Virus record (IMG/VR): IMGVR_UViG_3300047321_000238
Coordinates: 62,001-126,000 of that record
Direction: 5' to 3' (one strand)
DNA length: 64,000 bases
Position 1 is the first letter of the stretch; each line of letters opens with the position of its first letter. Made by a program: the position numbers and the translations under genes. Below the pieces are notes generated by a model. It had not been told where the DNA came from and searched no databases. It worked only from the letters and a program-made list of their open reading frames with translations. Shown here in pieces: positions 1 to 61,896 of the stretch.

Positions 1-242
1 TTGAAGACTCTCTATTAGCTGAAGTTGAATCAGTTAGCACTCCTGACACTATAAGTGATTCATTTGGATTAGATGACTTAGAAGGATTCAGTAACTCAAT
101 AATAGATTATTCTTGTTATGATGTTACTCCAGTTCAAGAAAACTATGATGAAAAACAATTCGTTGCAATTACAACAAACTACGATATTCCTCAAGTTGAC
201 ATGTGCAATGACGAAAACTATTTAAATGGTTTAACTCAATAA
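1..242 (+). CDS. 3' end of an acidic hypothetical protein (partial)
   Basis: Open frame from nt 3 (EDSLLAEVES...GLTQ) to TAA at 240-242, followed by a terminator. Confidence 0.7.
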   Translation, partial: EDSLLAEVESVSTPDTISDSFGLDDLEGFSNSIIDYSCYDVTPVQENYDEKQFVAITTNYDIPQVDMCNDENYLNGLTQ

Positions 243-252
243 TATCAACATT

Positions 253-285
253 AGAGTCTCATTAATTTGAGGCTCTTTTTATTTT
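253..285 (+). terminator. Rho-independent terminator
   Basis: AGAGTCTCA/TGAGGCTCT stem followed by T-rich tail. Confidence 0.75.
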
Positions 286-297
286 AAATTTGAAAGG

Positions 298-1398
298 ATG
301 ATTATAATGAAAACAATTAATAACAAACAATTAGAAACAGGAAAGAAAATAGTAAATCAATTAGGAGTTAACAAAACTGCTATAGCACTAACTCATTATA
401 ATGTAGAAAAGAACAATATTGATATCAGAATGTTTTTGTACTCAGATGAAGACATTACAATATATACAACTGGTAGATTGTTTTTAGGAACATATAAAAA
501 GGAAGATAAAAAGTTCTCATTCGATCCTGCTACTAAACTACCTTATGTTGTAGGATGCAATAACATTAAGACTCGTAGAGAAGTTAAGGATGCTATTAAG
601 AAAGTATTATCTACTCATGCAGATGTATTAAAAATGAGTAATGGATACAAAAACTTAATTAATGATGTAGAGGATGTTTTACTTTATGTTATCAAGAGTG
701 GAATTATTAAAGGCAGCTACTTACCACTTGAGGCACAACTAAAACATAATTGGATCATGAATCCAGACACAATAATTGTAGAGGGTGAGTCAGTAGCTAA
801 ACATGAAATAGCAGTAACAACAGATACTAATACAAAAACAGAAGGAGAAGTCAAAATGAATATAATGAGTGCGGCACATAAACTAAGAAAAGAAATGGAA
901 ATAGAAGATAAAGAATATGCATCTTACAGCTATAAACTTAAAATGAAGATTGCATTAAAGTATGCATGGGATACATGTCATATTAATAAAGTAGTAGCTA
1001 TTAAAGAAGTAGCTATTACTGTAGATAAAGTGATAAACATAAATACACGTAGACCAGAGCCAACAGCTAAGGATGAAGTTATGGCAAGTAAGCTTGAACC
1101 ATTAACAGCTAAGTGCGACAATGGCAAGAAAAGAATCAAAGGAGAAACTTATATTGTATCCACACCAGGACACGTTAATATAGAAGATCACATTGGAACA
1201 GTGATTAAGGCTTTTGATATATCCACTCAAATATTAGGCAGAAAAACATTAGCTGAGTTAAATGTGAAATTCACTGAAAGAAAGTTTGCAGAGAGCAGAT
1301 TTTACAGAGAGAATGCACATAAGTTAATTATTGTTACTAGCCATAAAGATGAATATGAACAAATTAAAAACCCAAGAGGATTTATACTTGTTAAATAG
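298..1398 (+). CDS. hypothetical protein, 366 aa
   Basis: Long ORF; GAAAGG SD suggests alternative start at 307; no recognisable motif. Confidence 0.8.
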   Translation: MIIMKTINNKQLETGKKIVNQLGVNKTAIALTHYNVEKNNIDIRMFLYSDEDITIYTTGRLFLGTYKKEDKKFSFDPATKLPYVVGCNNIKTRREVKDAIKKVLSTHADVLKMSNGYKNLINDVEDVLLYVIKSGIIKGSYLPLEAQLKHNWIMNPDTIIVEGESVAKHEIAVTTDTNTKTEGEVKMNIMSAAHKLRKEMEIEDKEYASYSYKLKMKIALKYAWDTCHINKVVAIKEVAITVDKVININTRRPEPTAKDEVMASKLEPLTAKCDNGKKRIKGETYIVSTPGHVNIEDHIGTVIKAFDISTQILGRKTLAELNVKFTERKFAESRFYRENAHKLIIVTSHKDEYEQIKNPRGFILVK

Positions 1399-1403
1399 TA
1401 TTG

Positions 1404-1906
1404 CCCCCTTCGGGGATAGATCAGTGCCATTCCTTCGGATAAATATAAATAAGCTCCCTCCGCTCGCAGTCCCTTCGGGAACAAATAAACTAACTTCGTT
1501 AGTAGAAATAAGCTTCGCAGACTAATCGTGCGGATTCTATGAGAGCTATATTGAAACTAAGTTCTTATTGAACTATTTAGTTCTCATAATAAATTCGCTA
1601 CACTCATAGTCTTAGTCATGCGTGTTATCTGAGATTATCCTTAATCCCAAATCTCATCTTATCCCAATAAACTCACTACGTTCGTAGTTTTAATCATGCG
1701 GATATCTTGAGACATTTATATGCTTACTCATAGTTATAAACTTACTTACGAGTGACATTATAAATTCAATTAGCTATTAATTAGCTACTACATACATACA
1801 ACAAGGGGGAAATAATAGGAGACTTGCGTTTAATCCATTTCTCAGGTTAAATCTATATGCTCTGTATGTATAAAATAAGCTACGCAGTTTAATCATGCGT
1901 ATTATT
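1404..1906. repeat. Cluster of TTC-loop mini inverted repeats and AAATAAGCT(T/A)CGCAG...ATC(A/G)TGCG repeats
   Basis: CCCC-TTC-GGGG, TCC-TTC-GGA, TCCC-TTC-GGGA, ACTAAC-TTC-GTTAGT; repeat copies at 1506 and 1873, partial copies at 1447 and 1681. Confidence 0.75.
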
Positions 1907-2180
1907 CGTGTAACTCTAATGCTGAAAATAGAGTGTAGACTTAGCAGGTTCTTCTATTGCTTGCTATATGTTGAACGTATAAATGGAATCCTTATATATT
2001 ATTTATGTCTGTAATAATATAAGAAGTTAGCCCAAGACATGTTGTATATATATGAGAGTGCACGCTTATGTATATATTCCTAATTAAATTATTAAATATG
2101 TATACATCCCTACTTACGAGTGAATGTATATATATAAGAATGATTTAAGCGAAAACGAAAAAATCAAAATTTGAAAGGAA

Positions 2181-2741
2181 ATGATTAAAATGGAAAAGAG
2201 AATATTTTTAGCAACAAAGAAAGAACACACAGTAGGAGTAGTGTTTAATGTAACAGAGAATAAATGTAACAGAATTCCTACAATCGTATATGAACACGCT
2301 GGACAAATGAATGGCTTCAGTGACACAAGACTTAGTGCAATGAGTGCATTAATAAAAGTAATTGAAGAAAATAATAGTACTGAACTTACAAATGTAGTAC
2401 CAGTATTTGTTAATGAAGCATTAGCAAAGTTTATAACTGATGAAACATATAAGTTCTGGATTAAGACTGGTGCAAAAAGTACTGGTGAAGTAATTAGTGA
2501 AAATGAAATGACAATACTAAAGAAGTTCGTAGAAGTTTGGAAAGAAAAAGGAGATGACTTTGTAATCAGAGATATATTTACTTGTCGTATTAATGATAAA
2601 GTAAAAGCTGACCCTGCAAAGATATCTAAATTCAAACCATACAGCAGACAAAATGACGCATACTGCAGATACTGTTGGGACGAAATTGCTAAACTATATA
2701 ATGAAACAGTTGAAGCATCTATAGCATCAGTTGCAGTTTAA
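2181..2741 (+). CDS. hypothetical protein (possible degenerate RNase H-like fold)
   Basis: ORF with GAAAGGA SD; weak resemblance to the RNase H helix region. Confidence 0.75.
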   Translation: MIKMEKRIFLATKKEHTVGVVFNVTENKCNRIPTIVYEHAGQMNGFSDTRLSAMSALIKVIEENNSTELTNVVPVFVNEALAKFITDETYKFWIKTGAKSTGEVISENEMTILKKFVEVWKEKGDDFVIRDIFTCRINDKVKADPAKISKFKPYSRQNDAYCRYCWDEIAKLYNETVEASIASVAV

Positions 2742-2843
2742 ATAAATAGATATATGAGATTGATTACTTATCGTAGTCTTTCTCATATTTTTTATGTTAT
2801 TTATGTGAAAATAATAAAACAATAAGAGGAGAGAATAAATAAA

Positions 2844-3038
2844 ATGAAAATTAATCAATCAAGAAAGTCAACACATTCAATCATGGCTCATCAAAGTTTC
2901 GAAGGAGTATTACTAATTAAAGATGGTATCAAAATGTATATACCTAAAGAATGGATTACTCAAAAAGGTAAGATAAAGAAGTATGCATTAAAAGCATTTG
3001 ATAAGTTACAAAAGGAAGAACTAAGAAAGGCAATTTAA
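2844..3038 (+). CDS. small basic hypothetical protein
   Basis: ORF track; GAGGAG upstream. Confidence 0.65.
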   Translation: MKINQSRKSTHSIMAHQSFEGVLLIKDGIKMYIPKEWITQKGKIKKYALKAFDKLQKEELRKAI

Positions 3039-3041
3039 ATT

Positions 3042-3206
3042 ATGTTCAGAATAAAATATGTAGTAAGTGGTTTGGTTAAAGAACAATTATATGAAGACAC
3101 ATTCTATGCAGTCAGTTTAAGACAAGCATGGTATTACTTTGGTAAGAAGTACGGCTTCAATATTAGGGACTTTAAGAGACTGAATAGTGGGGGAATAGCA
3201 TCATGA
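3042..3206 (+). CDS. small hypothetical protein, 54 aa (not in ORF track)
   Basis: MFRIKYVVSG...GGIAS; ATGA overlap with rnhA start. Confidence 0.6.
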   Translation: MFRIKYVVSGLVKEQLYEDTFYAVSLRQAWYYFGKKYGFNIRDFKRLNSGGIAS

Positions 3207-3685
3207 AGAAACTTAATGTGTTCATAGATGGAGCATGTAAAGATGTAAAGAACAAAGAAAAAGCAATTGGTGGTTGGGGATACATAATCACTGATGAATA
3301 TTTTAATGTTATCAAACAAGATAATGGCAAAATAAGAGAAGGCATCCAAGATAGTAATCGTGCAGAACTTGAAGGACTGTATCAAGCATTACTTAAGATG
3401 AAGACGTTTAAAGGAAATAATAAGTTCCATATCTATACTGATTGTGAAAGCATAGCAGATAGTTTAAATGGATATTCAGAACGTAGAGCCAATAGAGATT
3501 ATTGGGATAATATAGAACCTATATGTAAAAGGTTAGCAGGACACTTTAGAATATCTCACATCGTAAGTCATCAAGTAAATGATAACGATGATAAATTTAT
3601 TGAGTATAATAATAAAGTAGACAAGCTAGCAAGAATTGGAGCAAATAGTCTAACTAAAGCACCAGTAACAAACATAGCAATATAA
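3203..3685 (+). CDS. rnhA: ribonuclease HI
   Basis: VFIDGAC, SNRAELEG, YTDCES, VSH, NKVDKLA = RNase HI catalytic D/E/D/H/D motifs. Confidence 0.9.
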   Translation: MKKLNVFIDGACKDVKNKEKAIGGWGYIITDEYFNVIKQDNGKIREGIQDSNRAELEGLYQALLKMKTFKGNNKFHIYTDCESIADSLNGYSERRANRDYWDNIEPICKRLAGHFRISHIVSHQVNDNDDKFIEYNNKVDKLARIGANSLTKAPVTNIAI

Positions 3686-3696
3686 AAATTTATGAG

Positions 3697-4020
3697 ATGA
3701 AAGAGGTAATCATTATGAAACTAGGATTTAAATTAGGAAATATAGAATATAACGAAATCAAATTAAGCAATGTAGAATTAAACGTACAATTCTCAGCAGA
3801 AGAATTAGTAGCAGAATATGATTTATTAAAAAGAATAGCTAAAGAACTTCCAGAGATATGTACAGATTTAGCTAATGGAGCAGTAGCATTTGCAGAAATA
3901 GATAAAGCATTTACTAAGTATACAACTGCAGTAGTAGCAGAAGATTCAACAGAAGAAACAAAAACAACTGCAATGGATCTAGTTAAGTCAGCTATTAATA
4001 AAATCAATCAAGCAGTATAA
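3697..4020 (+). CDS. hypothetical protein
   Basis: ORF; likely start 3715 after GAGGT. Confidence 0.75.
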   Translation: MKEVIIMKLGFKLGNIEYNEIKLSNVELNVQFSAEELVAEYDLLKRIAKELPEICTDLANGAVAFAEIDKAFTKYTTAVVAEDSTEETKTTAMDLVKSAINKINQAV

Positions 4021-4050
4021 TTAAAACAATAAGAAGGAAGTGTAATTAAT

Positions 4051-4875
4051 ATGTCAAAAATAGATATAGATATGAATTCAACAGTAAAAATAAACGGTGG
4101 AAAGTCTTTAAATATGGCAGAGTTTGCAGATAAGTTTGGAGTAGATTTAGCTAATCCTCAATTAGTAGTATCAACAGCTAATATATTAGAGAAACAAGGC
4201 AAGTTAATAGTAGTTGAAACTAAATCTAAAGAAGAACAAATCGTAGACCAAGCAATGGGACAAGAAGTATTCCAAAGTGTTGTAGAAAATTTAGATAATG
4301 AAGAACAAGCTTATAAAGAACAACTAAGAGAAGCTAAGAAAGCAGAATCAGATGTATTAAAAATAACATTAGCATTTATAACAACATTAGATGCAACAAA
4401 GTTTAATATGTGGTTAACTAGCTTAGGAGTAACTGAAGTATCTCAAATAATAAAGAATGGTTGTATTAAACTATTAATAGAAGATATAACTCCGCAAGAA
4501 TATACTAAGATATCAGCTAAGTATAAAGCAGAGAAAGCTATTAATGCAACAGTTAATACAACAAGTAAAGTAATGAATGGAACTACTAATGCTGTAAACT
4601 ATGGTTTAAGTGAAGTAGTCGCACCTGTAGCTAAAATAGCAGGAGAAGCTGGTATGAATTTAGGTAAAGGATTATTCCATACTCTAATTAAAACAGGAGC
4701 AGGTTTAATCAATAGTGGAGCTAAAGCAGTTACAGATACTAAAATAGCTTTAATGACAGATCCTGAATGTTTAAGAGCAACTAGTCAATTAATCGATGCA
4801 AAGAATAATATAACTAGAGGCGTTAATAAACAAATGAATAATAGAGGATTTGGATCAGGAATCGAAATACTATAA
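4051..4875 (+). CDS. hypothetical protein, 274 aa
   Basis: ORF with GAAGGAAG SD; Gly/Ala-rich C-terminal half. Confidence 0.8.
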   Translation: MSKIDIDMNSTVKINGGKSLNMAEFADKFGVDLANPQLVVSTANILEKQGKLIVVETKSKEEQIVDQAMGQEVFQSVVENLDNEEQAYKEQLREAKKAESDVLKITLAFITTLDATKFNMWLTSLGVTEVSQIIKNGCIKLLIEDITPQEYTKISAKYKAEKAINATVNTTSKVMNGTTNAVNYGLSEVVAPVAKIAGEAGMNLGKGLFHTLIKTGAGLINSGAKAVTDTKIALMTDPECLRATSQLIDAKNNITRGVNKQMNNRGFGSGIEIL

Positions 4876-4893
4876 TAGATAGGAGTTGTTGTA

Positions 4894-5007
4894 ATGGGAC
4901 AATTAATAGCTAAAGTACTATTTAATCAGAAGGTGATGAGCAGTATTGTTCCGCCTTCTCTACTTAGTAATTTAGGAAACATAATAACAAAAGCAGTATT
5001 AAAATAA
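4894..5007 (+). CDS. small hypothetical peptide, 37 aa
   Basis: AGGAG SD; MGQLIAKVLF...KAVLK. Confidence 0.45.
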   Translation: MGQLIAKVLFNQKVMSSIVPPSLLSNLGNIITKAVLK

Positions 5008-5022
5008 TAGGAGTGATATATA

Positions 5023-5259
5023 ATGTTAGAACATCAACCAATCTTGAGAGCATTAATAGAACAAGGATATAGTAGCAAGATGTTAGGTGCAGTTATTAAT
5101 GAGAAGACTCAAAGAGGAACTGCATTAATCAAACTAGACTCTATAGAAAAACCATTTAATATATACTGGAATAAACATAAATCACAATGGCAAGACGTAA
5201 AACCAGCAGAAGAAGTATCACCTGCAATAGTAGAAAGATACTACGCATCAGCAATATAA
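5023..5259 (+). CDS. hypothetical protein
   Basis: AGGAGTG SD, ORF track. Confidence 0.75.
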   Translation: MLEHQPILRALIEQGYSSKMLGAVINEKTQRGTALIKLDSIEKPFNIYWNKHKSQWQDVKPAEEVSPAIVERYYASAI

Positions 5260-5320
5260 GATTAAAATAGCTATTGGTAATCTACTTAATCTAATATATA
5301 AATAATAAAATCCTATATAT

Positions 5321-5355
5321 AAATAAGCTTCGCAGTTTTAATCATGCGTATTATT
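5321..5355. repeat. Third full copy of the AAATAAGCTTCGCAGTTTTAATCATGCGTATTATT element
   Basis: Near-identical to 1873-1906. Confidence 0.8.
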
Positions 5356-5800
5356 TGTATATAGGTTGGACCCTTAATCCATGAAAAGACGATTGGAGCA
5401 TCTACGTATGTTGGGTATCGCAAAGTTTTCATTAATCCATCCCGTTCCTTATAGTATTATGCAGGATTTAGAATTCATTCTTGCATTCCTACTATAGGGA
5501 ATACCCCTAAAAAGACTCAATCTTGCAAGAAAAAGAAAACCAACTTTCAGAATTACTATTATTGTGGAATAGATTATAATATATGCAAATATATTTTTAA
5601 GCTATCTTAACACAATTATGGTTAATTTTTTTCAGAGTTGGACACTAGTGTAATATATATAACACCAATTAACAGCTAACGCAGTTATGGAAATAACACT
5701 TTGATATAGCTTAAAGTATATTTGCTGTTAATACACAATTCGTACTTACGAGTGCCGTAGATGCATATGCGACATAAAGTTAAGATGGATTTGTGCTTCC

Positions 5801-5988
5801 GAGTGCGAGCGTTAGCGAGCACGTATAATTAAATAGCGTTAGCGTCAATTATATAATAGCGTTAGCGTCAAAATTAAATAAAGCGTTAGCGTAGATTTAT
5901 AAATAGATATAATCTTCTATAGTATACCCATACTATTATGAAGTATATCGTCCTACAATTCCATTCAGTGACAGTTATAGCGTTAGCG
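5801..5988. repeat. Five direct repeats of AGCGTTAGCG in AT-rich spacers (iteron-like)
   Basis: Copies at 5808, 5835, 5858, 5882, 5979. Confidence 0.85.
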
Positions 5989-6351
5989 TTTAATAACAAG
6001 CGTAGAATCGATTGTATCATCTATTAAGAGTAGCCATGTGTATACATACTACTAAACTTTAATAGATGCAACGTTGAACACGTAGTGCGAAACACAATAA
6101 AATTATAATAATTTCTCTATACCTACCTAGCAGAATGTAAGTGATGTGGTAGTAGAGGATTAGGAGTCATATCTCCGTTTTAAAGAAATGGCACTCGTAG
6201 ACCTGAACCAAGACGGTTTTGGGACGTAATCGGTGCTTTCACGTTATAATGGATATAAGCGTAGTGAGTAGTCTAAAAACGAACGGATTACTATTACAGT
6301 AGTATATATACTTATATACACACATGGAATAAAAATAAAGGAGATTATAAT

Positions 6352-6582
6352 ATGCCTAATTATAATAGAATAAAACAAGAATTAATTAATAAAAGAATTG
6401 AAGAAAGATATGATGGAGTAGATATGTTAACATCACGTCTTACTAATGGAGATATAGCTATTAAATGTAATGATATAGATAATAAGTGTAACCATCCTAA
6501 TGGTTGTTGTATATTAAGTTTACAAGAATTTCAAGAATGGAATTGTAAATGTGCATATCAAAATAAGTATTACTTTAGGTAA
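6352..6582 (+). CDS. Cys-containing hypothetical protein
   Basis: AAGGAG SD; six Cys in the C-terminal half. Confidence 0.7.
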   Translation: MPNYNRIKQELINKRIEERYDGVDMLTSRLTNGDIAIKCNDIDNKCNHPNGCCILSLQEFQEWNCKCAYQNKYYFR

Positions 6583-6599
6583 GAAAGGATATATAATAG

Positions 6600-6932
6600 A
6601 TGGAAGTATTAAAGTATATTAATGATACGTTAGTATCATATACATTAGCTGAACTATATGATAATAGAATAGGAATATCTGTAAGTAACGTAGAAGAGTT
6701 TATAGACATAATCGATAAATTAGATGCAACAGGTTTAGTGTATATGCCTACCGATGTAAAACGAGATAAGGTAGCATTGTACAATAGAGGTACAAGTAAA
6801 AATAGTTGTATATTAATAGAAAGAAGACCTGACCTAGGTAAATGTGAATATATATTAAGGTATTATTCAGAAGACTATGTAACTATGTATGCTGGCACTA
6901 TAAAGAAGTATAGTGAGGTGACATTAGTATAA
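6600..6932 (+). CDS. tag-array paralog 1 (MEVLKYIN)
   Basis: Shared N-terminal peptide and YT(L/I)..L...I.I.V..EEF core. Confidence 0.85.
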   Translation: MEVLKYINDTLVSYTLAELYDNRIGISVSNVEEFIDIIDKLDATGLVYMPTDVKRDKVALYNRGTSKNSCILIERRPDLGKCEYILRYYSEDYVTMYAGTIKKYSEVTLV

Positions 6933-7252
6933 TGGAGTTGTTAAAGCATATTAATGATATGGCAAATACGTATACTATAAGTAAGCTGTTAAATACAAAC
7001 GCTATAGTACAGTGTGATAGTAAAGAAGAGTTTATGCAGTTAATATATAAGATAAACTGTACATCGTATCTACATACAACCCTTAGTGGTAGTACATGGG
7101 ATATTTATAATAACCAGGATAGATATAATGGAAGTATGGCAATATACTTTAACAGTAGACATCTAGAGTTTTGTTACGTAGATTATTATAAAACATATAG
7201 ACGTAAGAACCCTAAGTATAAGTATAGTGAAGTAAATATAGTAACTATATAG
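6932..7252 (+). CDS. tag-array paralog 2 (MELLKHIN)
   Basis: TAATG overlap; family core and FC..DYY motif. Confidence 0.85.
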   Translation: MELLKHINDMANTYTISKLLNTNAIVQCDSKEEFMQLIYKINCTSYLHTTLSGSTWDIYNNQDRYNGSMAIYFNSRHLEFCYVDYYKTYRRKNPKYKYSEVNIVTI

Positions 7253-11715: not shown

Positions 11716-12042
11716 ATGAGGGAATTATTAAAACATATACAAGAGAATCAATATAAAATAGAAGATATTATAAAAGATAATGTAGCGTTGTATATTGATA
11801 ATAGAAAAGATTTAGATACTATAATAGAAGTAGCAAATAGACATAATATATTTATTGGGCCATTTATAAGAACATCATTAACGGATTCATATTGTAAAAA
11901 AGGAATCTTTATAAAGATAATACACATTAAAGAAAATGATTATTATGTGAAAGGATATAAATATAGATTAGGATGGAATTTCGATGATAATGATAAATCA
12001 CTCTTAACTGTATATAGTAGAGAGGATTATATATTAGTATAA
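11716..12042 (+). CDS. tag-array paralog 12 (MRELLKHIQ)
   Basis: YKIEDII..VALYI core. Confidence 0.8.
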   Translation: MRELLKHIQENQYKIEDIIKDNVALYIDNRKDLDTIIEVANRHNIFIGPFIRTSLTDSYCKKGIFIKIIHIKENDYYVKGYKYRLGWNFDDNDKSLLTVYSREDYILV

Positions 12043-13090: not shown

Positions 13091-13717
13091 ATGGAAATAT
13101 TAAAACATATAAATGAATTAAAAACTAAAGGAATAGCATATATATGTTACGATACTGGAGGTAGTGGAGAAGATGGTAGAAGATTATACGCACGCAATAT
13201 ATATGATTATTATAAAGAATTATACTTCGATGTAGTAGTATTAAGCTATAGTACTCACGCAAAATATAATAATATAGATAATATTCTACCACAAGGAACT
13301 GGTGGCACTTATATGTCATCGCCATTAACTTTATTAATGCAAGATGCAGAGAGAGTTAAAAACGATAAAGAACTATGTCATTATGCTTACAACTTCAATC
13401 CTAATAATATAATTGTATTAGTAGGGGATGGAGATAACTGGAGTGAAGATAATGATAGATTCTGTAGATGTATAGAAGAGATAACAAAAACTAATAGTGT
13501 TGTATATCATGAAATATTAGGAGGTTCACATCATGATAATACAATGTACAAGCGGTTAAAAGCTAAAAGATATTCAAAGGTTCATCTCTATAAAGTAGAG
13601 AAAGAACAAGATATATTTGGCAATAAGAAAAAACAAATAAAAGGTGCCGATTATTATACTGCTATAACTGAAGATTTAGTAGATAGTATATTTGATTGGG
13701 ATGTATCATATGAATAA
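13091..13717 (+). CDS. vWA-like protein resembling the YhbH/YeaH (DUF444) C-terminus, with tag (MEILKHIN)
   Basis: DTGGS, GGTYMSS, DGDNWSEDNDR, YHEI. Confidence 0.75.
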   Translation: MEILKHINELKTKGIAYICYDTGGSGEDGRRLYARNIYDYYKELYFDVVVLSYSTHAKYNNIDNILPQGTGGTYMSSPLTLLMQDAERVKNDKELCHYAYNFNPNNIIVLVGDGDNWSEDNDRFCRCIEEITKTNSVVYHEILGGSHHDNTMYKRLKAKRYSKVHLYKVEKEQDIFGNKKKQIKGADYYTAITEDLVDSIFDWDVSYE

Positions 13718-52879: not shown

Positions 52880-53086
52880 GGTTATATCGTAGCTAACGGT
52901 AACGGTTACGAGACAATGACTTTTAGAATTCTTCTTATTGGATAATTCTTTTCATGGTACACCTCCTTTCGAATATAATATATATAAGCTATGCTGTTCA
53001 GCCTTTCAGCATAAGAGGTAAAGTCCTCGACATAATAAAAGAGTGTAGTAACTTCAGGGCGTGGATGTTACTACGCAAATACATAT

Positions 53087-53173
53087 GGAAGAGTGGCCGA
53101 GATGGTTGATGGCGGCAGACTGTAAATCTGTTCTGTAAAAAGCACGTTGGTTCGAATCCAACCTTTTCCACCA
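53087..53173 (+). tRNA. tRNA-Tyr(GTA)
   Basis: Cloverleaf, long variable arm, CCA. Confidence 0.95.
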
Positions 53174-53412
53174 AAGTCTAAGGTTAAGATATATTCACTC
53201 AATTGACTTGAATTGAATAAAGTTACACATTAGGTTAGTAATACTTTGATTAAAGATATATTCATCAGAATATTGATAGTCAATTATAACTATACGTAAT
53301 ATGGATGTTTCTGAACTTCAGCCCCTGTGGTACATAAATATGTGAGAAATATCGGAGTATTCTAATTAGGAATATGTGTCTAGTAGTAGGTCGGGACTAG
53401 ACAAAATAATAT

Positions 53413-53488
53413 GGATAGATAGCTCAGATGGTAGAGCAGTGGATTGAAGATCCGCGTGTCCAAGGTTCGATTCCTTGTCTGTCCACCA
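53413..53488 (+). tRNA. tRNA-Phe(GAA)
   Basis: Cloverleaf, 76 nt, CCA. Confidence 0.95.
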
Positions 53489-53557
53489 GTAGGTTTTTGT
53501 TAGCTTTTGCCGTAGAACTCCTAGAGAGAGTCAAATCAAAAACTATCTCCACCATAT

Positions 53558-53634
53558 GGCTCTGTAGCTCAGTTGGAAGAGCATCCGTATTATTAAACGG
53601 AGTGTCGGAGGTTCAATTCCTCCCAAAGTCTCCA
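53558..53634 (+). tRNA. tRNA-like gene with 8-nt anticodon loop ATTATTAA (Asn-like?)
   Basis: D and T arms and CCA intact; TCCGT/ACGGA stem. Confidence 0.7.
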
Positions 53635-53697
53635 TTCATCCTTTTTATATTTTTATATTGTAGATACTCTCTATTATTGGGAGGGTATTTGCAACAT

Positions 53698-53772
53698 GGC
53701 TCATTAGTATAGCGGTTAGTACACTGCCCTGTCACGGCAGAAGCGGGAGTTCGATTCTCCCATAAGTCGCCA
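53698..53772 (+). tRNA. tRNA-Asp(GTC)
   Basis: Cloverleaf, CCA, one acceptor mismatch. Confidence 0.9.
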
Positions 53773-53831
53773 TAGGATTTTCTTTTGTCAGTTTCTTTCT
53801 AGATCAAAAAAGTAAACTGTAAAACCTATAT

Positions 53832-53920
53832 GGAGCAATACTCAAGTGGCTTAAGAGTCCAGTCTTGAAAACTGGTAGGCTGTAACAGGTGCGTAGGTTC
53901 GAATCCTACTTGCTCCGCCA
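53832..53920 (+). tRNA. tRNA-Ser(TGA)
   Basis: Cloverleaf, long variable arm, GCCA. Confidence 0.95.
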
Positions 53921-53986
53921 AGGCGTTAAGCCTATGTTTTCTTTAGACGTAAGTTTCTTTTCTCAAAAGCAAACACGTTGAATTAT

Positions 53987-54063
53987 GGGTTCTTAGCTCA
54001 GATGGCTAGAGCACTGGCCTCCAAATCCAGGTGTCCTAGGTTCGATTCCTAGAGGGCTCGCCA
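53987..54063 (+). tRNA. tRNA-Trp(CCA)
   Basis: Loop CT-CCA-AA, G73, CCA. Confidence 0.9.
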
Positions 54064-54140
54064 ATAAAGAGTAAAGTTGTACCGCTCTAATGTTAGTTAT
54101 TAGTGTACATCGCAAAGGAGAATGACTAACAAAACAATAT

Positions 54141-54231
54141 GGAACTGTACTCAAGAGGTTTAAGAGGAGCCCTTGCTAAGGGTTTAGACGAATTTATTCG
54201 TGCTAGGGTTCGAATCCCTACGATTCCGCCA
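54141..54231 (+). tRNA. tRNA-Ser(GCT)
   Basis: Cloverleaf, long variable arm, GCCA. Confidence 0.9.
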
Positions 54232-54570
54232 AGGGTAGTTCAACACACTTCTAGTAGAGTTTCTACAAGTGGCAAGAGTAAATGTATGCAGTTAACTTAT
54301 AAGAACATTGCATAGCAGTATAGAACCAGTGGTAATGATCCACCGATACTGCAAAAGGTTTTAATGCTTAGTAGGAACAACTAAGTAGTGTACGCTATCT
54401 ACAAAAGAGTATCCTCATGGTGCTGATACTTGAAAGATGGATAAGGGTGAACCACTTGAAACCCGATAGCAAAAGACCTAATAAGTAGCAAAATTAGGTT
54501 TAAAACTCTAAATATAATTAGGGATTAAAGCAATTACAAATGCAAGTTTAGGACTTTTATAATAGTCCTT
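54232..54570 (+). ncRNA. candidate structured ncRNA (~340 nt)
   Basis: Many nested stems (GCAGTAT/ATACTGC, GCTATC/GATAGC, ACCTAAT/ATTAGGT); no ORF. Confidence 0.45.
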
Positions 54571-54575
54571 TATAT

Positions 54576-54651
54576 GCTGAATTAGCACAATTGGCAGTGC
54601 ATCTGACTTGTAATCAGAAGGTTAAGAGTTCGAATCTCTTATTCAGCTCCA
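54576..54651 (+). tRNA. tRNA-Thr(TGT)
   Basis: Perfect cloverleaf, CCA. Confidence 0.95.
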
Positions 54652-54780
54652 AAACCAGTATTCGGTGGCAATCTAATTGCACTAGCTGACGAGGTTTGTC
54701 ACACAGAGATAGACGTTAATTCTCGGAGTCTTTATTAGGAAGACATCTAGACAGTATGGTAGGGACTGTCCAACCGATAT

Positions 54781-54855
54781 AGCATTGTTGAGGAGTGGTT
54801 TCTCGCTAGCTCAAAAAGCTAGAGCACACTGGTTCGATTCCAGTCTTTGCGACCA
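54781..54855 (+). tRNA. degenerate tRNA-like gene (loop TCAAAAA)
   Basis: D, anticodon and T stems paired, ACCA end; acceptor has 3 mismatches; no U33. Confidence 0.6.
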
Positions 54856-54993
54856 TAATCTATGTAAGTCTTCACAGATTCTAATTGTGTGAAGCCGAAA
54901 CTTATATCAACGCGGTAAGGATAAAGTATTAGATAAACCATCCTATTAGCAGAGATTACGGGTGCAGAAGTTCGTAGTTATAGCATCCACCAA

Positions 54994-55069
54994 CAGGATA
55001 TAGGACAGTTGGTAGTCCGCCACATTTGGGATGTGGAGATCCTAGGTTCGAGTCCTAGTATCCTGACCA
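54994..55069 (+). tRNA. tRNA-Pro(TGG)
   Basis: C1-G72, A73, TT-TGG-GA loop, CCA. Confidence 0.95.
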
Positions 55070-55305
55070 AGGTCGTCTGTAGTTTAAGCGAATTCTTTAC
55101 TAACTAGCTTAACAAAAAACTTACTGTTGATTCAAAGCATGCCTGCGATCATGGCCAATGATTTGTTAGTTTTAATCATAAGCTGAATCAAAGTGTTCTT
55201 AGGAAGTACAATATGCATATCGTTCAAAAGCGAAAGATTTCATAGATGGCGTTTATAATAAGAACAACAATAAAGTAATGAGCCACCTGCCATTACTTTA
55301 AATAT

Positions 55306-55383
55306 CAGGATGTAGCTCAGTTGGTAGAGTGCTGGCACGATTATAGCCAGAAGTCGTAGGTTCAATCCCTACTGTCCTGACCA
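55306..55383 (+). tRNA. tRNA-Pro-like body with 9-nt anticodon loop ACGATTATA
   Basis: CAGGATG/TGTCCTG-ACCA; CTGGC/GCCAG stem. Confidence 0.8.
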
Positions 55384-55390
55384 AAGTGTG

Positions 55391-55471
55391 GGGAGCACAT
55401 ATTGCGGAAAGCTTTGTAACCAAAAGTAAGGAATGTTGTTCTGGCATAAAGTTCCTTTGCTCCCATGGTTA
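55391..55471 (+). ncRNA. novel ~74-nt branched RNA, copy 1, plus ATGGTTA tail
   Basis: GGGAGCA/TGCTCCC closing stem; covaries with copy 2. Confidence 0.75.
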
Positions 55472-55667
55472 TTTACTTGGTAGCTATACCAAGACTATAA
55501 AATAGTCGTATCTTAGGAACGTAAGCACTAAGCGTCATCAGGCTAAAGACTAATAATTAATTTATTAGAGATGAGAACCCTGACCAATGTATTGAAAGCT
55601 TAACGGATGTTGGAAACGTTAGTTTTTAGGGTGATAACCTTGAGTAGTGTCTAAATAATCATAATAT

Positions 55668-55746
55668 CAGGATGTAGCTCAGTTGGTAGAGCACTGGCAT
55701 TAATAGGAGCCAGAGGTCGTAGGTTTGAGTCCTACTGTCCTGACCA
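55668..55746 (+). tRNA. tRNA-Pro-like body with 10-nt anticodon loop ATTAATAGGA
   Basis: Same acceptor and anticodon stems as 55306. Confidence 0.8.
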
Positions 55747-55754
55747 TATCTGTC

Positions 55755-55836
55755 GAGAGTACAGTTTGCAGAAAAGCTTAAGAACCTAAAGCAGGGAATG
55801 TTGTTCTGGTATAAAGTTCCCTTACTCTCATGGTTA
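55755..55836 (+). ncRNA. novel ~74-nt branched RNA, copy 2, plus ATGGTTA tail
   Basis: GAGAGTA/TACTCTC closing stem. Confidence 0.75.
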
Positions 55837-55840
55837 ACAA

Positions 55841-55915
55841 TGGGGAATAGTCAAGCGGAAAGACAGTGGATTTTGATTCCACGATGCGAAGGTTCGAACC
55901 CTTCTTCCTCAGCCA
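55841..55915 (+). tRNA. tRNA-Gln(TTG)
   Basis: U1-A72, G73, TT-TTG-AT loop, CCA. Confidence 0.95.
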
Positions 55916-56010
55916 CCTACAATAGTAGGAGTTTATTATAAGTCCGATTTCAATCTTTTATTAGCTATTAATGGCTCGCCAAAGTAATCATTAATAGCTA
56001 ATATAATATC

Positions 56011-56086
56011 ATGAAGGTAGGATAGTTGGTAGTCCACCAGTTTGTGGCACTGGTTTACGCGAGTTCGAGTCTCGTCCTTCATTCCA
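56011..56086 (+). tRNA. tRNA-His(GTG), atypical acceptor end
   Basis: TT-GTG-GC loop; A1-U72, U73, no genomic G-1. Confidence 0.85.
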
Positions 56087-56087
56087 T

Positions 56088-56164
56088 GGCTTCATAGCTC
56101 AGTTGGCTAGAGCAATCGGTTCATACCCGAAAGATCATTGGTTCAAGTCCAATTGAAGCCACCA
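56088..56164 (+). tRNA. tRNA-Met(CAT), elongator type
   Basis: GGTTCATACCCG arm as in Firmicute elongator Met; CCA. Confidence 0.9.
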
Positions 56165-56372
56165 TAATAAAGAAGATATTCAATATTTGTAAATAATTTC
56201 TCCCGTAGAATGTGTTTATGTGTGTGGTTGAATGTCTTTTTTATTTTCTAAATATTTACCGTTTATACTTAAACTTATTAGATACTTGCAAACAATACTG
56301 AATAAAACTGTTGTGGCAAGAGTATATAAATGGTATGGTGTAAGTATCTAATAATACAAAAAGGAGTATACT

Positions 56373-56696
56373 ATGAGAGAACACACTTTAATATTAGAAA
56401 AAGTAACACCTAGTAAAACTGAATTAGTAGATAACAAATTTTACAGATTAGAATTCACTGGTTTAAATAATCAAATATATACTGCATTTGTTGACAAAAA
56501 AGATGTTGATAATGAAGTTATACTTTTGAATGATACATTTGATGTAATAAAAGTAGATATATTTAGAGATAATTTAAATGAATCAGTTAATGATAATATA
56601 TTTGAGACACAACCTCATTTAAAGTATGAAGGAGTCTATTCTTATATTACAATAGATATAAATCATACAGATCCAGCAGTGTTCAATAGAATATAA
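56373..56696 (+). CDS. hypothetical protein embedded in the tRNA cluster
   Basis: AAGGAG SD. Confidence 0.75.
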   Translation: MREHTLILEKVTPSKTELVDNKFYRLEFTGLNNQIYTAFVDKKDVDNEVILLNDTFDVIKVDIFRDNLNESVNDNIFETQPHLKYEGVYSYITIDINHTDPAVFNRI

Positions 56697-56869
56697 TGAA
56701 AAATCACCGAGAAATAAGCCTGATTATGCCAATTAGTTCGTCACCTCTAGTTGAAGGTTCATTCTAATAGGTACGAGTTTGCTACGTTAAATGTTTGTAA
56801 TCAGTAAAAGTTCTAAAATGTTATTATGAATTCGAATAGTAATGACGTGCTAGTGTGCACAGGTTGACT

Positions 56870-56990
56870 AGTAACATGGAGAAGGCGGTCCATCTTCGAT
56901 AGAAGACCAGGGGTTCGATTCCCTTTGTTATCGCCACAAAACGGTAATAGTTTGGTACGGATTAGAGATTCGACTCCTCTACTCTCCACA
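56870..56990 (+). ncRNA. tRNA-like element with two T-loop hairpins
   Basis: AGGGG-TTCGATT-CCCTT and TAGAG-ATTCGACTC-CTCTA; internal GCCA. Confidence 0.6.
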
Positions 56991-56996
56991 AAATAT

Positions 56997-57091
56997 GTGG
57001 GTATGGTGAAATTGGCAGACACAGGCAAAAAGCGGCAACTCAGATGATATGCTCAGTTGTGTGAAGGTTCGAATCCTTCTACCCTACATCA
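56997..57091 (+). tRNA. tRNA-Leu-like body with collapsed anticodon arm
   Basis: GTGAAATTGGCAGACAC D arm, long variable stem, perfect T arm; no anticodon stem; ends ATCA. Confidence 0.65.
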
Positions 57092-57092
57092 T

Positions 57093-57173
57093 GGGTTAAT
57101 AGTTCAATTGGTTAGAATACCGTTTGCTTACAAACAACGGAGATGTAGGTTCGAGTCCTACAAGGGCCTGCCA
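57093..57173 (+). tRNA. tRNA-like gene with 11-nt loop containing CTTACAA (Val-like)
   Basis: CCGTT/AACGG stem, T arm, GCCA; weak acceptor. Confidence 0.65.
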
Positions 57174-57187
57174 AATAAATATAATAT

Positions 57188-57256
57188 GGGCCGATAGCTC
57201 AGTGGCAGAGCATATGACTTTTACTCATATACGTGGGTTCGATTCCCAATAGCCTA
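57188..57256 (+). pseudogene. degenerate tRNA-Lys-like gene, 8-nt loop CTTTTTAC, no CCA
   Basis: D and T arms present; acceptor mismatched. Confidence 0.6.
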
Positions 57257-57429
57257 TAATAGTTATTATCACAATTATAAGAATCACAGAGTGGGTTCTT
57301 GGTATTTAGGAATGACGTCAAAGGTAATGCATGTTAGTGGGACGTTGAAGGGTGCTCGTAACTTTAGCTAAGTTAGGAAGAGCATACCTAGTAGTTGTCT
57401 GAGGGTTGGCAATCACAAAAAAATAATAT

Positions 57430-57500
57430 GAGTTTGTAGCTCAGTGGTAGAGCATAGGAATTTTAATCCTAGACATAGGTTCGATTCCTGTCATAGCTCA
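57430..57500 (+). tRNA. tRNA-Lys(TTT), somewhat degenerate, CCA not encoded
   Basis: TAGGA-ATTTTAA-TCCTA arm; T arm intact. Confidence 0.7.
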
Positions 57501-57862
57501 AAAACAAAAGGACATTAATCATGAGGAGGTAAATAGGTCTTATGATTTAAATTTTTGGAGTTATAATTGAGGGAATATAAATAGCCAAAAACCCGTTTCT
57601 CCTTAGTGCCTATTTGCTAATGCGAGAAGGTTATAACTTGTGAGTATAGAAAGTCCTCTATACTTGATAATGAGAATAGTTGCCCGTATTCCCTTGTGGT
57701 TAAGACAATTATTCAATAGTTCGTGAGGCTACCAGTCTGGCAACAGATGAGAGTTTGTGGTAATCTCGAAACCACCAAATCGACAAGTGAGTGAAAAGCT
57801 CACAAAAAAAATCCTAATTCTCTTCTAATCGAAAGAGCAAGTTTTAGTATGCTTGCTCTTTT
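57501..57862 (+). ncRNA. candidate structured ncRNA ending in a terminator
   Basis: AGTATAGA/TCTATACT, GAATAGTTG/CAATTATTC, TCTG-GCAA-CAGA, GTGAG/CTCAC; AAAGAGCAAG/CTTGCTCTTT hairpin. Confidence 0.45.
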
Positions 57863-57869
57863 ATATTAT

Positions 57870-57952
57870 GCCGATATAGTTCAAGGTGAGCACTAAGGGA
57901 GCTCCGCTAACGTGGCTTAGAAGTGTAGGTTCGATTCCTATAGTCGGCACCA
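57870..57952 (+). tRNA. tRNA-Thr-like body with 18-nt insertion-type anticodon loop
   Basis: GCCGATA...AGTCGGC-ACCA; CTAAG/CTTAG stem around GGAGCTCCGCTAACGTGG. Confidence 0.75.
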
Positions 57953-58194
57953 TTGACATACTATTAATTTTATGGTAATGTCAAATATATAATATTAATT
58001 TGTTGCAAATACATAGTATATATTTCTTGAGTAAGATTAATGATAACGATTAATTTTGCTAGGTTAAAAGCCACATGTAAATATATACTTTGTGTTTTTA
58101 ATAACATTATCAAAAAAAATAAATTATTAAGAGTAAAGTATTTTTATATGATTAGTGTTGACTTATTTGTAAACTAATAACATGAGTGATGAGA

Positions 58195-58226
58195 AGAGAG
58201 CGGCTGTACCCCGTCTCTCTTTTTAT
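58195..58226 (+). terminator. Rho-independent terminator
   Basis: AGAGAG.CGG/CCGTCTCTCT followed by T run. Confidence 0.7.
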
Positions 58227-58374
58227 TATGCAAAAACTAAGTATTTTTAATTACAATTGGTAGCTTACTGTAAAAAGAGGTTCCTATTTTGTTAAATTAA
58301 AGGTAAAATAGAGGTAATATTAAAATGTTACTTGTATTTTAACTTTAAATTAAAAAGCAAAGGAGAAAATTAAT

Positions 58375-59175: not shown

Positions 59176-59200
59176 TACAACAATATCTGATGGAGGATTT

Positions 59201-59869: not shown

Positions 59870-59920
59870 CATTTCAATATTTACAATATATAAATAATAT
59901 AAATCAAGGGGGAAAATATC

Positions 59921-61084: not shown

Positions 61085-61101
61085 ATAAAAGGTATAAGAC
61101 T

Positions 61102-61144: not shown

Positions 61145-61155
61145 GGTTCTTTATT

Positions 61156-61875: not shown

Positions 61876-61896
61876 AATTGAATAGAGAATGATTCT

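Follow-up and report, generated by a model that had tools for sequence, protein, structure and literature searches.

A conserved array of DNA mini-hairpins and promoter-like repeats near a predicted two-barrel RNA polymerase gene of a jumbo phage

What is the role of a non-coding gap, with co-oriented genes on both sides, that holds a series of tiny inverted repeats and a repeated element in a phage genome? The window analysed here is a stretch of 64,000 nucleotides (positions 62,001 to 126,000 of IMG/VR record IMGVR_UViG_3300047321_000238), and lies in a complete genome of 247,883 bp and 30.5% GC. This is the genome of a jumbo phage from a rhizosphere metagenome; it encodes a tail sheath, and is therefore a myovirus. 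The record ends in a 127-bp direct repeat, and no alternative genetic code was needed. The ribosome-binding sites are strong, from which a Bacillus- or Clostridium-like host is only a guess. A sequence-only reading of the gap had noted four inverted repeats closing a TTC loop and three copies of a repeated element, and had proposed, by reference to coliphage N4 and to the stable d(GCGNAGC) hairpins, that they may be single-stranded DNA hairpin promoters or else primase or origin signals. We find that the observation is correct in all its parts, whereas the interpretation is supported only in part: the repeated element behaves like a promoter, but kinship with N4 is not supported.

The array and its repeated units

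The four inverted repeats are present, and the first half of the repeated element, AATAAGCT(T/A)CGCAG, occurs at 1507, 1874 and 5322. Its second half, TA(A/G)TC(A/G)TGCG, occurs at 1523, 1613, 1691, 1890 and 5339, which makes five units rather than three, the two additional copies (1588, 1666) being degenerate. All five are on the + strand, and the TAATCRTGCG units occur nowhere else in the genome: a search allowing 2 mismatches found no further convincing copy. The hairpin cores read GC-TTC-GC at 1512-1518 and 5327-5333, and GC-TAC-GC at 1879-1885. The genes on both sides are also on the + strand, so that the G-N-A reading of the loops is indeed on the template strand, as the sequence-only reading had it. 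The features of the region are as follows (window coordinates; L followed by a number designates a lineage or its locus, and G000 the complete genome).

1..242, + strand: 3' end of the gene for a 1,672-aa predicted single-chain two-barrel RNA polymerase (whole ORF G000 57224-62242, locus L005, protein P0016), containing the stretch HDGMDFDIDAMQFF.
298..1398, + strand: 366-aa gene of unknown function, between the polymerase gene and the array in the nine lineages whose contig covers it; no Pfam or PHROG family was found for it, and its structural model is poor (pLDDT 61) and has no fold match.
1405..1415, + strand: hairpin H1, CCCC-TTC-GGGG (C-GAA-G on the minus strand), 7 nt after the stop codon.
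1431..1439, + strand: hairpin H2, TCC-TTC-GGA.
1449..1480, + strand: decayed unit head (AATAAGCTCCCTCCGCTCGCAG) followed by hairpin H3, TCCC-TTC-GGGA (1470-1480).
1489..1503, + strand: hairpin H4, ACTAAC-TTC-GTTAGT, which aligns with the head of the long-form units (compare AAATAAACTCACTACGTTCGTAG of unit 3).
1506..1545, + strand: unit 1, with AAATAA, GC-TTC-GC (1512-1518), TAATCGTGCG (1523-1532) and TATGAGA (1538-1544).
1588..1634, + strand: unit 2, degenerate, hairpin lost, with TAGTCATGCG (1613-1622) and TCTGAGA (1628-1634); its ortholog in L016 is at about 11729-11770.
1666..1712, + strand: unit 3, long form, with AC-TAC-GT (1675-1681), TAATCATGCG (1691-1700) and CTTGAGA (1706-1712).
1872..1914, + strand: unit 4, with GC-TAC-GC (1879-1885) and TAATCATGCG (1890-1899), the last unit before the gene at 2181.
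2181..2741, + strand: 186-aa gene, the first downstream of the array, with twelve homologs; where the upstream DNA is on the contig, its last unit lies about 80-300 nt before the start of this gene.
5321..5364, + strand: unit 5, with GC-TTC-GC (5327-5333), TAATCATGCG (5339-5348) and TTTGTATATAGG, directly before a conserved non-coding block; L017 has the same arrangement at 13154-13190.
5365..5610, + strand: conserved non-coding block (GGTTGGACCCTTAATCCATGAAAAGACGATTGGAGC ... TTAAGCTATCT), the candidate RNA made from unit 5; it is conserved in 5 lineages whose flanking proteins are far more diverged, and 9 of 43 predicted pairs show compensatory changes.

The array thus has two kinds of element: free-standing, G+C-rich mini-hairpins with a TTC loop closed by C-G (1405, 1431, 1470 and 1489), and five units of about 45 nt. 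Each unit is built of an A-rich run, a 2-3-bp hairpin with a T-N-C loop closed by C-G, a TAAT...GCG box ending 16-17 nt after the hairpin, and a TTGAGA / TGTGA-type box 8-9 nt further on.

Could such small dyads arise by chance? The pentamer C-TNC-G is 13 times denser in 1396-2185 than in the rest of the genome. Outside the region, 74% of 193 such pentamers have no further base pair, while inside it 7 of 8 have at least 2 bp and 3 of 8 at least 4 bp. Only one other C-TTC-G triloop hairpin of 4 bp or more exists in the whole genome. The stability of the hairpins is another matter. The nearest-neighbour DNA energies that we used (ViennaRNA DNA parameters) have no bonus for GNA loops; they give about 0 to -3.6 kcal/mol for either strand, about 0 for the short unit stems, and do not separate the strands. 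The exceptional stability of such hairpins therefore rests on the literature, where d(GCGNAGC) is reported to melt at about 76 C (PMC13037366). That heptamer, two G-C pairs plus a G-N-A loop, is found exactly on the minus strand in units 1, 4 and 5, but not in unit 3 (AC/GT), nor in many units of relatives, such as ATC/GAT and AAC/GTT.

Several other identities were considered and dropped: a CRISPR-like mini-array (the repeats are degenerate, and spaced by 78-199 bp), type III toxin-antitoxin RNA repeats (no exact tandem), REP/IS200-type hairpins (not dispersed, and no transposase) and DnaA boxes (only 7-of-9 matches by eye).

Conservation of stems and loops in related lineages

No close relative was found among GenBank phages by megablast, blastn and tblastn with the region, the 366-aa protein, the polymerase core and protein P0067. 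In IMG/VR, a search for related loci with three flanking proteins returned nothing, and an exact-motif scan of viral contigs gave only three hits, in contigs of 49-56% GC, which we discarded as due to chance. Ten related lineages nevertheless keep the array. On 70 C-TNC-G sites from these 10 lineages (61 distinct), the covariation score of the stems is 0.473, against 0.134 +/- 0.026 in shuffles (0 of 500 as high), with 63 cells changed on both sides against 24.6, and every slid register scores lower. In 7 lineages, the second pair is Watson-Crick in 56 of 59 sites, using all four pair types, against 28% in the genome background. For instance, the ortholog of H3 in L016 is ATTTCC-TTC-GGAAAT: the stem changed on both sides and the loop was kept.

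Conservation of the loops as GNA in related phages had been named beforehand as a point on which the proposal could fail, and it held: of 30 units chosen by their downstream box, 25 have T-N-C loops (T 14, A 8 and G 3 in the middle position), although five lack the T-N-C hairpin. The loop thus stays T-N-C on the coding strand, G-N-A on the template strand, and in the hairpins it is always closed by C-G. The bias is strand-specific, as C-NNN-G with G-N-A on the + strand (7 of 18 with a second pair) or with other loops (34 of 92) is at background level. The 11-mer of H1 is identical in all nine lineages that include the end of the orthologous gene, within about 40 nt of its stop codon, and a second CC-TTC-GG hairpin follows it at 22-27 nt in eight of these nine, L029 showing none there.

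Do the hairpins act in DNA, or in the RNA of the + strand? In the latter case, they would be short UUC/UNC-loop stem-loops, partly of the C(UUCG)G type, serving as 3'-end stabilisers, terminators or processing sites for the polymerase operon, or as binding sites for an RNA-binding regulator, in an antiterminator-like boxA/boxB arrangement, and the repeated boxes would be part of the RNA signal. H1-H3 and most free-standing hairpins in relatives contain CTTCGG or CTACGG, the hexamer of the very stable C(UNCG)G RNA tetraloops, and C(UUCG)G hairpins occur in intercistronic regions of phage T4; H1 likewise directly follows a gene. The + strand of the gap also folds as RNA better than shuffles (z -4.7), more so than the minus strand (z -2.0), and one unit in L015 changes GCG to GTG in a way that keeps only a wobble pair with CGTA. 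However, the tetraloop fits H1-H3 only among the hairpins of the window: in H4, in the L016 hairpin ATTTTC-TGC-GAAAAT (L016:11377) and in all unit hairpins it would be closed by C.U or C.A, and only the triloop with C-G closure fits every case. Stems of 2-3 bp with A-U pairs and a triloop are not stable RNA structures, and AUC-UAC-GAU-type stems would, by our estimate from nearest-neighbour rules, be unstable as RNA. No G.U or G.T pairs occur in the two inner variable pairs, as expected for DNA pairing. No U-run consistently follows the hairpins, the tails after H1 differ between lineages, and the only intrinsic terminator predicted in 1-7000 is at 253-276, upstream of the gap. No Rfam 15 family gave a relevant match in 1200-6500, at the gathering threshold or at E up to 5, and units sit before ORFs in L020 and L023 and between ORFs in L028. 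We therefore consider a role in RNA unlikely, although it is the least unlikely of the alternatives.

The predicted polymerase upstream of the array

If the units are promoters, which enzyme reads them? N4 promoters are read by a giant T7-like virion RNA polymerase. No PF00940 match was found in the present genome, although control genomes gave none either, and the ten largest proteins (906-3,081 aa) matched no polymerase family in Pfam or PHROGs; no beta or beta-prime family of multisubunit polymerases was found in the genome. However, the previously unannotated 1,672-aa ORFan that ends at 242 is, on its sequence and predicted fold, a single-chain two-barrel RNA polymerase. Its motif G869-x-D871-F-D873-I-D875 is invariant in 34 full-length relatives and in 25 distant ones, in an invariant R-x-P ... 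G-x-D-F-D-I-D context. While a full-length polymerase profile gave no hit among PDB sequences, a narrower superfamily profile reached QDE-1 at its GGDYDGD catalytic motif, and the only PF05183 trace in the genome lies in this ORF. The AlphaFold model is confident (pLDDT 86, pTM 0.82), and its top 22 Foldseek hits, those with E <= 1e-3, are all QDE-1 (E 1.5e-9), RDR2 or gp66 of crAss-like phage phi14:2 (E 5.6e-6). TM-scores are only 0.25-0.44, as expected for multi-domain proteins at 10% identity. The invariant Q570-x-R572 ... K577 (FQARGGGLK) is, from conservation alone, a candidate for the basic residues that the second barrel supplies in this class. The analysis thereby annotates this ORFan, and 34 metagenomic relatives, as a predicted polymerase of a family that has no member among 50,697 GenBank phage records by tblastn.

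The order polymerase gene, gene of about 370-470 aa, CCCC-TTC-GGGG was kept in all nine lineages whose contig reaches that far, down to 26-34% polymerase identity. This linkage is by position only. The units are also always on the gene strand and always intergenic: in L020 they sit 60, 67 and 137 nt before ORF starts, in L023 80 nt, and in L028 they lie between ORFs. Their position relative to conserved blocks of the second gap differs between lineages, so the unit is modular.

An alternative is that the units are promoters read by the host RNA polymerase together with a phage sigma factor, or sites of a double-strand DNA-binding regulator, the small dyad being incidental to a spacer. The phage does encode a sigma-70-family protein (a region-2 match above the curated cut-off at G000:132600), the TAAT(A/C)AT box resembles a -10 hexamer, and by our reading an A/T-rich, TATA-like stretch often lies about 17 nt upstream of it. 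However, a spacer or a sequence-specific duplex site would not keep base-pairing while changing sequence (AGC/GCT, ATC/GAT, ACC/GGT, AAC/GTT), nor keep a fixed loop polarity. A consensus scan for -35 and -10 hexamers 16-18 nt apart gave 33 hits against 44.5 expected from shuffles, none on the unit cores, apart from one weak 9-of-12 match downstream of unit 3, and there are only five sites in 248 kb. We tend to consider this scenario improbable.

Promoters, or an origin of replication?

The array might also be an origin or priming site, as the sequence-only reading suggested. Mini-hairpins on the displaced or lagging-strand template would resist SSB coating and mark where the phage primase, or the two-barrel polymerase acting as a primer-maker, starts, as at the phage G4 origin and plasmid ssiA sites. 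GCGAAGC-type mini-hairpins, with strand-specific function on single-stranded DNA, are described at the G4, ST-1 and alpha3 origins and at ssiA (PMC13037366), and the minus-strand heptamers of units 1, 4 and 5 (GC-GAA-GC, GC-GTA-GC) are identical to the d(GCGNAGC) form. The phage has its own DnaG-type primase, DnaB-type helicase and DnaE polymerase, the units sit in the two longest non-tRNA gaps of the genome, and tandem promoters next to A+T-rich DNA are an origin design in T7. The known sites, however, are priming signals on single-stranded replicons, whereas here the elements carry downstream boxes, are strictly co-oriented with genes, and are interleaved with ORFs in L020 and L028. The cumulative GC- and AT-skew minimum is at 52-53 kb, at the strand switch 10 kb upstream of the array, without inflection at 63-68 kb; the intervals between units (90, 78, 199 and 3449 bp) show no iteron-like regularity; and the linkage is to the polymerase gene rather than to the replication genes, which lie 90-135 kb away. 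An origin is not excluded, but seems unlikely.

The explanation that we favour, with a probability of about 0.55, is that the gap is a cis-regulatory array belonging to the neighbouring predicted polymerase, and that the units are its promoters. In this view, the hairpin would form on the template strand once the DNA is unwound or supercoiled, and would be part of what the enzyme recognises. Transcription would run rightwards into the gene at 2181 and, from unit 5, into the conserved non-coding block at 5365. The free-standing hairpins would be either decayed units or extra binding or termination signals for the same enzyme. The analysis itself establishes the hairpins, their covariation and strand bias, their restriction to this locus, the linkage to the polymerase gene and, as a model with its matches, the fold of the polymerase. 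Promoter function, the activity of the polymerase, its being the enzyme that reads the units, and formation of the hairpin in template-strand DNA rather than in RNA are inferred.

A number of points speak against this reading. The only sequencing run found to contain this DNA is the source metagenome, kept as contigs, which cannot show RNA ends, and no RNA run was found, so that the proposal is made without transcript 5' ends. Many unit stems are only 2-3 bp and contain A-T pairs, and extrusion of so short a hairpin from duplex DNA is physically doubtful without a protein. Units 1-3 of the window are not followed by ORFs, the free-standing hairpins have no downstream boxes and are not accounted for, and five promoters are few for a 248-kb genome. 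The sigma-70-family protein could read these sites with the host enzyme.

How does the array compare with known systems? In N4, a template-strand hairpin with a 3-nt G-N-A loop closed by C-G is an early promoter (P1-P3; PMC4496689), the outer loop bases forming a sheared G.A pair; here the corresponding sequence pattern, C-GNA-G on the minus strand, is kept in 10 lineages with covarying stems. As in N4, non-conserved stem bases vary while pairing is kept, copies are very few per genome and clustered in one region, and the reader would be a phage-encoded polymerase rather than the host enzyme. The enzyme classes are unrelated, however: a 3,500-aa T7-like virion protein in N4, against a 1,672-aa QDE-1/gp66-like protein here. 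N4 is a podovirus and not a jumbo myovirus. Stems are 5-7 bp in N4, against 2-6 bp here (2-3 bp in the units), and N4 conserves -17 to +1 with the start 11 nt from the loop centre, whereas here two further boxes lie 8-17 and 25-33 nt beyond the hairpin, so that conservation reaches about 30 nt past the loop.

In Thermus phage P23-45, a two-barrel polymerase fused to the tape measure has its own short AT-rich promoter motif upstream of pre-early genes, conserved only in relatives that carry the polymerase (10.1101/2022.12.01.518664). No hairpin is described there, and that polymerase is a weaker fold match (P74 gp62 / P32 gp64, E about 0.01).

We found no hairpin promoter described for the two-barrel class. 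Phage and eukaryotic RdRP-like two-barrel polymerases (gp66, QDE-1, YonO) work on single-stranded DNA, and how they choose start sites is a question that the present candidate signal, compact, conserved, covarying and physically linked to such a predicted polymerase in ten lineages, allows to be addressed directly with one recombinant protein and short oligonucleotide templates. Tentatively, and with somewhat less confidence than in the promoter reading itself, a family of uncultivated jumbo myophages may carry a QDE-1/crAss-like polymerase that recognises its promoters through a template-strand G-N-A mini-hairpin plus two downstream boxes. This would be an independent invention of the N4 strategy by an unrelated enzyme class, and the first defined promoter for the RdRP-like branch. 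Hairpin promoters would then have arisen twice, in T7-like and in two-barrel enzymes, d(GCGNAGC)-type mini-hairpins would have a second biological role, in transcription, and a small orthogonal polymerase-promoter pair could be obtained.

The closest enzymes, the virion RNA polymerase gp66 of phi14:2 and Neurospora QDE-1, share with the present protein the predicted single-chain two-barrel fold and a DFDxD / DYDGD catalytic loop, at about 10% sequence identity; gp66 is longer (2,180 aa) and lies in the structural module. It transcribes single-stranded or denatured DNA well and duplex DNA poorly, and no common motif was found upstream of gp66-dependent early transcripts (10.1101/2020.03.07.982082). 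Preference for single-stranded DNA templates, shared by gp66 and QDE-1, would fit a promoter that includes a single-strand hairpin. In phi14:2, two long intergenic regions are highly transcribed early, and it is in the two longest gaps that the units sit here.

The genome and its hairpin-bearing gap

The complete virus record, of which the window covers bases 62001-126000, is 247,883 bp long, has 30.5% G+C and a 127-bp terminal overlap, and comes from a rhizosphere metagenome. It is a jumbo myophage, as it contains tail-sheath and major-head PHROG families, a DnaE-type polymerase, a DnaG-type primase, a DnaB-type helicase and a sigma-70-family gene. The latter is a 416-aa ORF matching sigma-70 region 2 above the Pfam cut-off, at window ~70600-70743 (132600-132743 of the complete record, G000); the phage also carries its own sigma factor. 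A cluster of 16 (ARAGORN) to 19 (Rfam) tRNA genes lies at window 53087-57952; ARAGORN reports two of them with irregular anticodon loops (53558, 55668), and one as tRNA-Asn with anticodon ATT (55306). Genes run leftwards up to 52.9 kb, rightwards from 53.4 to 185.4 kb, and leftwards again after that, and GC and AT skew follow this pattern, with the minimum at 52-53 kb.

The observation made in the sequence-only reading, namely four TTC-loop inverted repeats and a repeated element in three copies, is entirely confirmed. The features concerned are, in window coordinates:

1399-2180: the longest non-tRNA gap of the genome
1405, 1431, 1470 and 1489: four inverted repeats, each closing a TTC loop
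1507, 1874 and 5322: the repeated element, AATAAGCT(T/A)CGCAG
1523, 1613, 1691, 1890 and 5339, + strand: the second half of the element, TA(A/G)TC(A/G)TGCG
1588 and 1666: two more, degenerate, units
5260-6351: the second gap, opened by the third copy of the repeated element

The second half of the element occurs five times, always on +, and nowhere else in 248 kb, which is how the two degenerate units were recognized. C-TNC-G is 13-fold enriched in the gap, where it nearly always continues into a stem (7 of 8 sites, against 26% elsewhere). Only one other C-TTC-G triloop hairpin of 4 bp or more exists in the whole genome.

Conservation in relatives and anatomy of the unit

Nothing similar was found in GenBank phages or, by close-relative scans, in IMG/VR. 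However, word-based protein searches with the two flanking proteins found homologs on metagenomic contigs, and these contigs are syntenic. Together with three more distant contigs reached through the predicted polymerase described below, ten lineages could be compared (individual contigs are designated by L numbers). In all nine lineages whose contig includes the end of the orthologous gene, the gap opens within about 40 nt of that stop codon with the same CCCC-TTC-GGGG, and in eight of them a second CC-TTC-GG hairpin follows. Other hairpins change their stems on both sides but keep the loop: for example, TCCC/GGGA in the window corresponds to ATTTCC/GGAAAT in L016, and AGC/GCT, ATC/GAT, AAC/GTT, ACC/GGT and GACC/GGTC are found among the units of L017, L020 and L022. 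Loops are TTC, TAC or TGC, rarely TCC.

On 70 sites (61 distinct), the covariation score is 0.473, against 0.134 +/- 0.026 in shuffles (0 of 500 as high), and all slid registers score lower. Because these sites had been picked by the pentamer, we also looked at 30 units picked only by their downstream box, and 25 of these have a T-N-C loop closed by C-G. The opposite polarity (G-N-A on the + strand) and other loops are at background, and there are no G.T pairs in the inner positions. Absence of GNA conservation in related phages had been named in advance as a refuting condition; the loops proved to be conserved.

The repeated unit consists, in order, of an A-rich run, the mini-hairpin, a first box ending 16-17 nt after the hairpin, and, 8-9 nt further on, TTGAGA, TGTGA(A/G) or TTGTATA. 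The first box is TTTTAATCATGCG in the window lineage, TATCTAATAT(C/A)(G/A)CG in L017 and L022, and TATATTTTAGACGAG in L020. The window also has a long form in which eight bases are inserted, and the GC-TTC-GC core singled out in the sequence-only reading is the hairpin position of the short form. The hairpins at 1470 and 1489 sit in or after sequences that look like decayed unit heads.

Units are always on the gene strand and intergenic. In L020 three of them lie 60-137 nt before ORF starts, and in L023 one lies 80 nt before the ortholog of the gene that starts at window 2181. In L028, longer hairpins tipped by GC-TAC-GC or AC-TTC-GT are followed by a TAAT...TATGAAAAT box before ORFs. The fifth unit of the window and its L017 counterpart end about 10 nt before a conserved non-coding block (GGTTGGACCC...). 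In L020 the unit has moved elsewhere in that gap, and L016 has none there, so the unit behaves as a module.

The neighbouring gene and the possible reader of the units

The ORF that ends at window 242 encodes 1,672 aa with no Pfam or PHROG family. It contains ...RHPVS...IIPASHYYMEKHDGMDFDIDAMQFF, a stretch that is invariant in four syntenic homologs and, for G-x-D-x-D-x-D, in 34 full-length and 25 distant relatives found by an exhaustive profile search. One distant relative passes Pfam's RdRP model, and the only trace of that model in the genome lies in this ORF. A superfamily profile hits QDE-1 at GGDYDGD. The AlphaFold model of residues 380-1480 is confident (pLDDT 86, pTM 0.82), and all 22 of its significant Foldseek matches are QDE-1, plant RDR2 or the virion polymerase gp66 of crAss-like phage phi14:2, followed by the P74/P32 phage polymerases. 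By motif and predicted fold, it is therefore a single-chain two-barrel RNA polymerase. No T7/N4-type enzyme was found among the large proteins of the phage, and no beta or beta-prime subunits were found in the genome.

The question arises as to which molecule forms the hairpins. The covariation shows intramolecular pairing; a duplex-binding protein would not tolerate changing sequence while demanding complementarity. The fixed loop polarity, co-oriented with transcription, points to a single strand, either the RNA (UNC loops) or the template DNA (GNA loops). We favour template DNA for four reasons. Only the triloop with C-G closure fits all copies; 2-3-bp stems with A-U pairs are not credible RNA structures; no wobble pairs occur; and C-GNA-G, which in three window units is exactly d(GC-GNA-GC), is the DNA motif known for anomalous stability and for promoter function in N4, although short A-T-containing stems should be much less stable than GCGAAGC. 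The free-standing hairpins may be a different matter: three of the four contain CTTCGG, and they, especially the invariant CCCC-TTC-GGGG after the stop codon, may equally be RNA-level 3' structures, termination signals or extra binding sites.

Relatives of this polymerase class transcribe single-stranded DNA well and duplex DNA poorly. The positional linkage, the restriction to one locus and the placement before ORFs and a conserved non-coding block make promoters of the neighbouring polymerase the best reading, to which we give a probability of about 0.55. What the sequence comparison establishes is the existence of the hairpins, their pairing, their polarity and their linkage to the gene; in the absence of RNA data, the promoter function, the start sites and even the direction of use are inferred, as are the activity of the predicted polymerase, its role as reader and the formation of the hairpin in template DNA. 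The phage sigma factor is an alternative reader, and the linked 366-aa protein has no Pfam or PHROG family, a poor structural model and no fold match. An origin or priming role is less likely, because of the position of the skew minimum and the interleaving of units with ORFs, but is not excluded.

The sequence-only reading, which had invoked N4 and proposed ssDNA-hairpin promoters or primase/origin signals, is thus supported in part. The array would work like N4 early promoters but is not a member of that family, as the enzyme class, stem length and downstream architecture all differ. Full-text searches found no description of a hairpin promoter for a two-barrel phage polymerase. YonO-like enzymes are known in two other jumbo phages (PMC7824862), promoters are known for the P23-45 enzymes, without a hairpin, and for gp66 no motif was found. 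What would be new here is the attachment of a hairpin promoter, already known in N4, to a different polymerase class.

Other elements of the two gaps and their surroundings

The non-coding block that follows the fifth unit lies at window 5365-5610 and is conserved across five lineages (also L016:14976-15236, L017:13190-13439, L020:12944-13145 and L023:3460-3740), much better than the flanking proteins. It begins GGTTGGACCCTT(A/T)ATCCATGAAAAGACGATTGGAGC. RNAalifold gives 43 pairs, 9 with compensatory changes, for example GGACCC/GGGU(A/G/U). It is probably a structured RNA, and it has no Rfam match. Further on, at window 5808-5988, AGCGTTAGCG occurs five times within 180 bp and nowhere else in the genome, preceded by the conserved CTT(C/T)CGAG(T/G)GCGAGCGTTAGCGAGC. 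These repeats are conserved in three relatives (L016:15436-15500 and 15753, L017 and L020) and look like binding sites for a regulator.

Another word, CTTACGAGTG, occurs four times in the genome (window 1745-1754, 2113-2122, 5745-5754 and 123506-123515), three of them in the two gaps. The copy about 60 nt before the gene at 2181 (TACTTACGAGTGAATGTATATATATAAG) is conserved at the same place in L015, L016, L017 and L018, and may be a second class of promoter or an operator. The fourth copy sits at the convergence point of the + and - gene blocks. Between the two gaps, an RNase H gene (Pfam PF00075, PHROG 531) at window 3203-3685 is syntenic in all relatives.

Outside the window, on locus L011 of the same genome, the divergent region between the leftward and rightward gene blocks (L011:1080-1145, G000 ~53080-53145) keeps (A/T)AGGTATATAT and, about 25-40 nt further on, AGCCCC(N1-2)GGG(G)TA in three lineages (also L028:4920-4990 and L029:5000-5045). 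This is a possible early-promoter or regulatory signal different from the units. The first gene of the rightward block (L011:1397-1852, G000 53396-53851) encodes a small protein containing RYGGDEFIIIF, that is, a GGDEF (diguanylate-cyclase-like) motif. Just upstream of the predicted polymerase gene (L011:4720-5160, G000 56720-57160), about seven copies of AGGAGGT(T/G)GAT-like, Shine-Dalgarno-like words are spread over roughly 450 nt, whose ORF content was left out of account. Finally, the precomputed annotation gives a Rho_N (PF07498) hit for the polymerase homolog at L029:6001-10683. The N-terminus of the window's protein has two copies of NEGMDV(Q/K)MVN, the first followed by VAKIVGVSNEEVVALAIRLGLEV. 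This may be a nucleic-acid-binding helix-extended-helix module.
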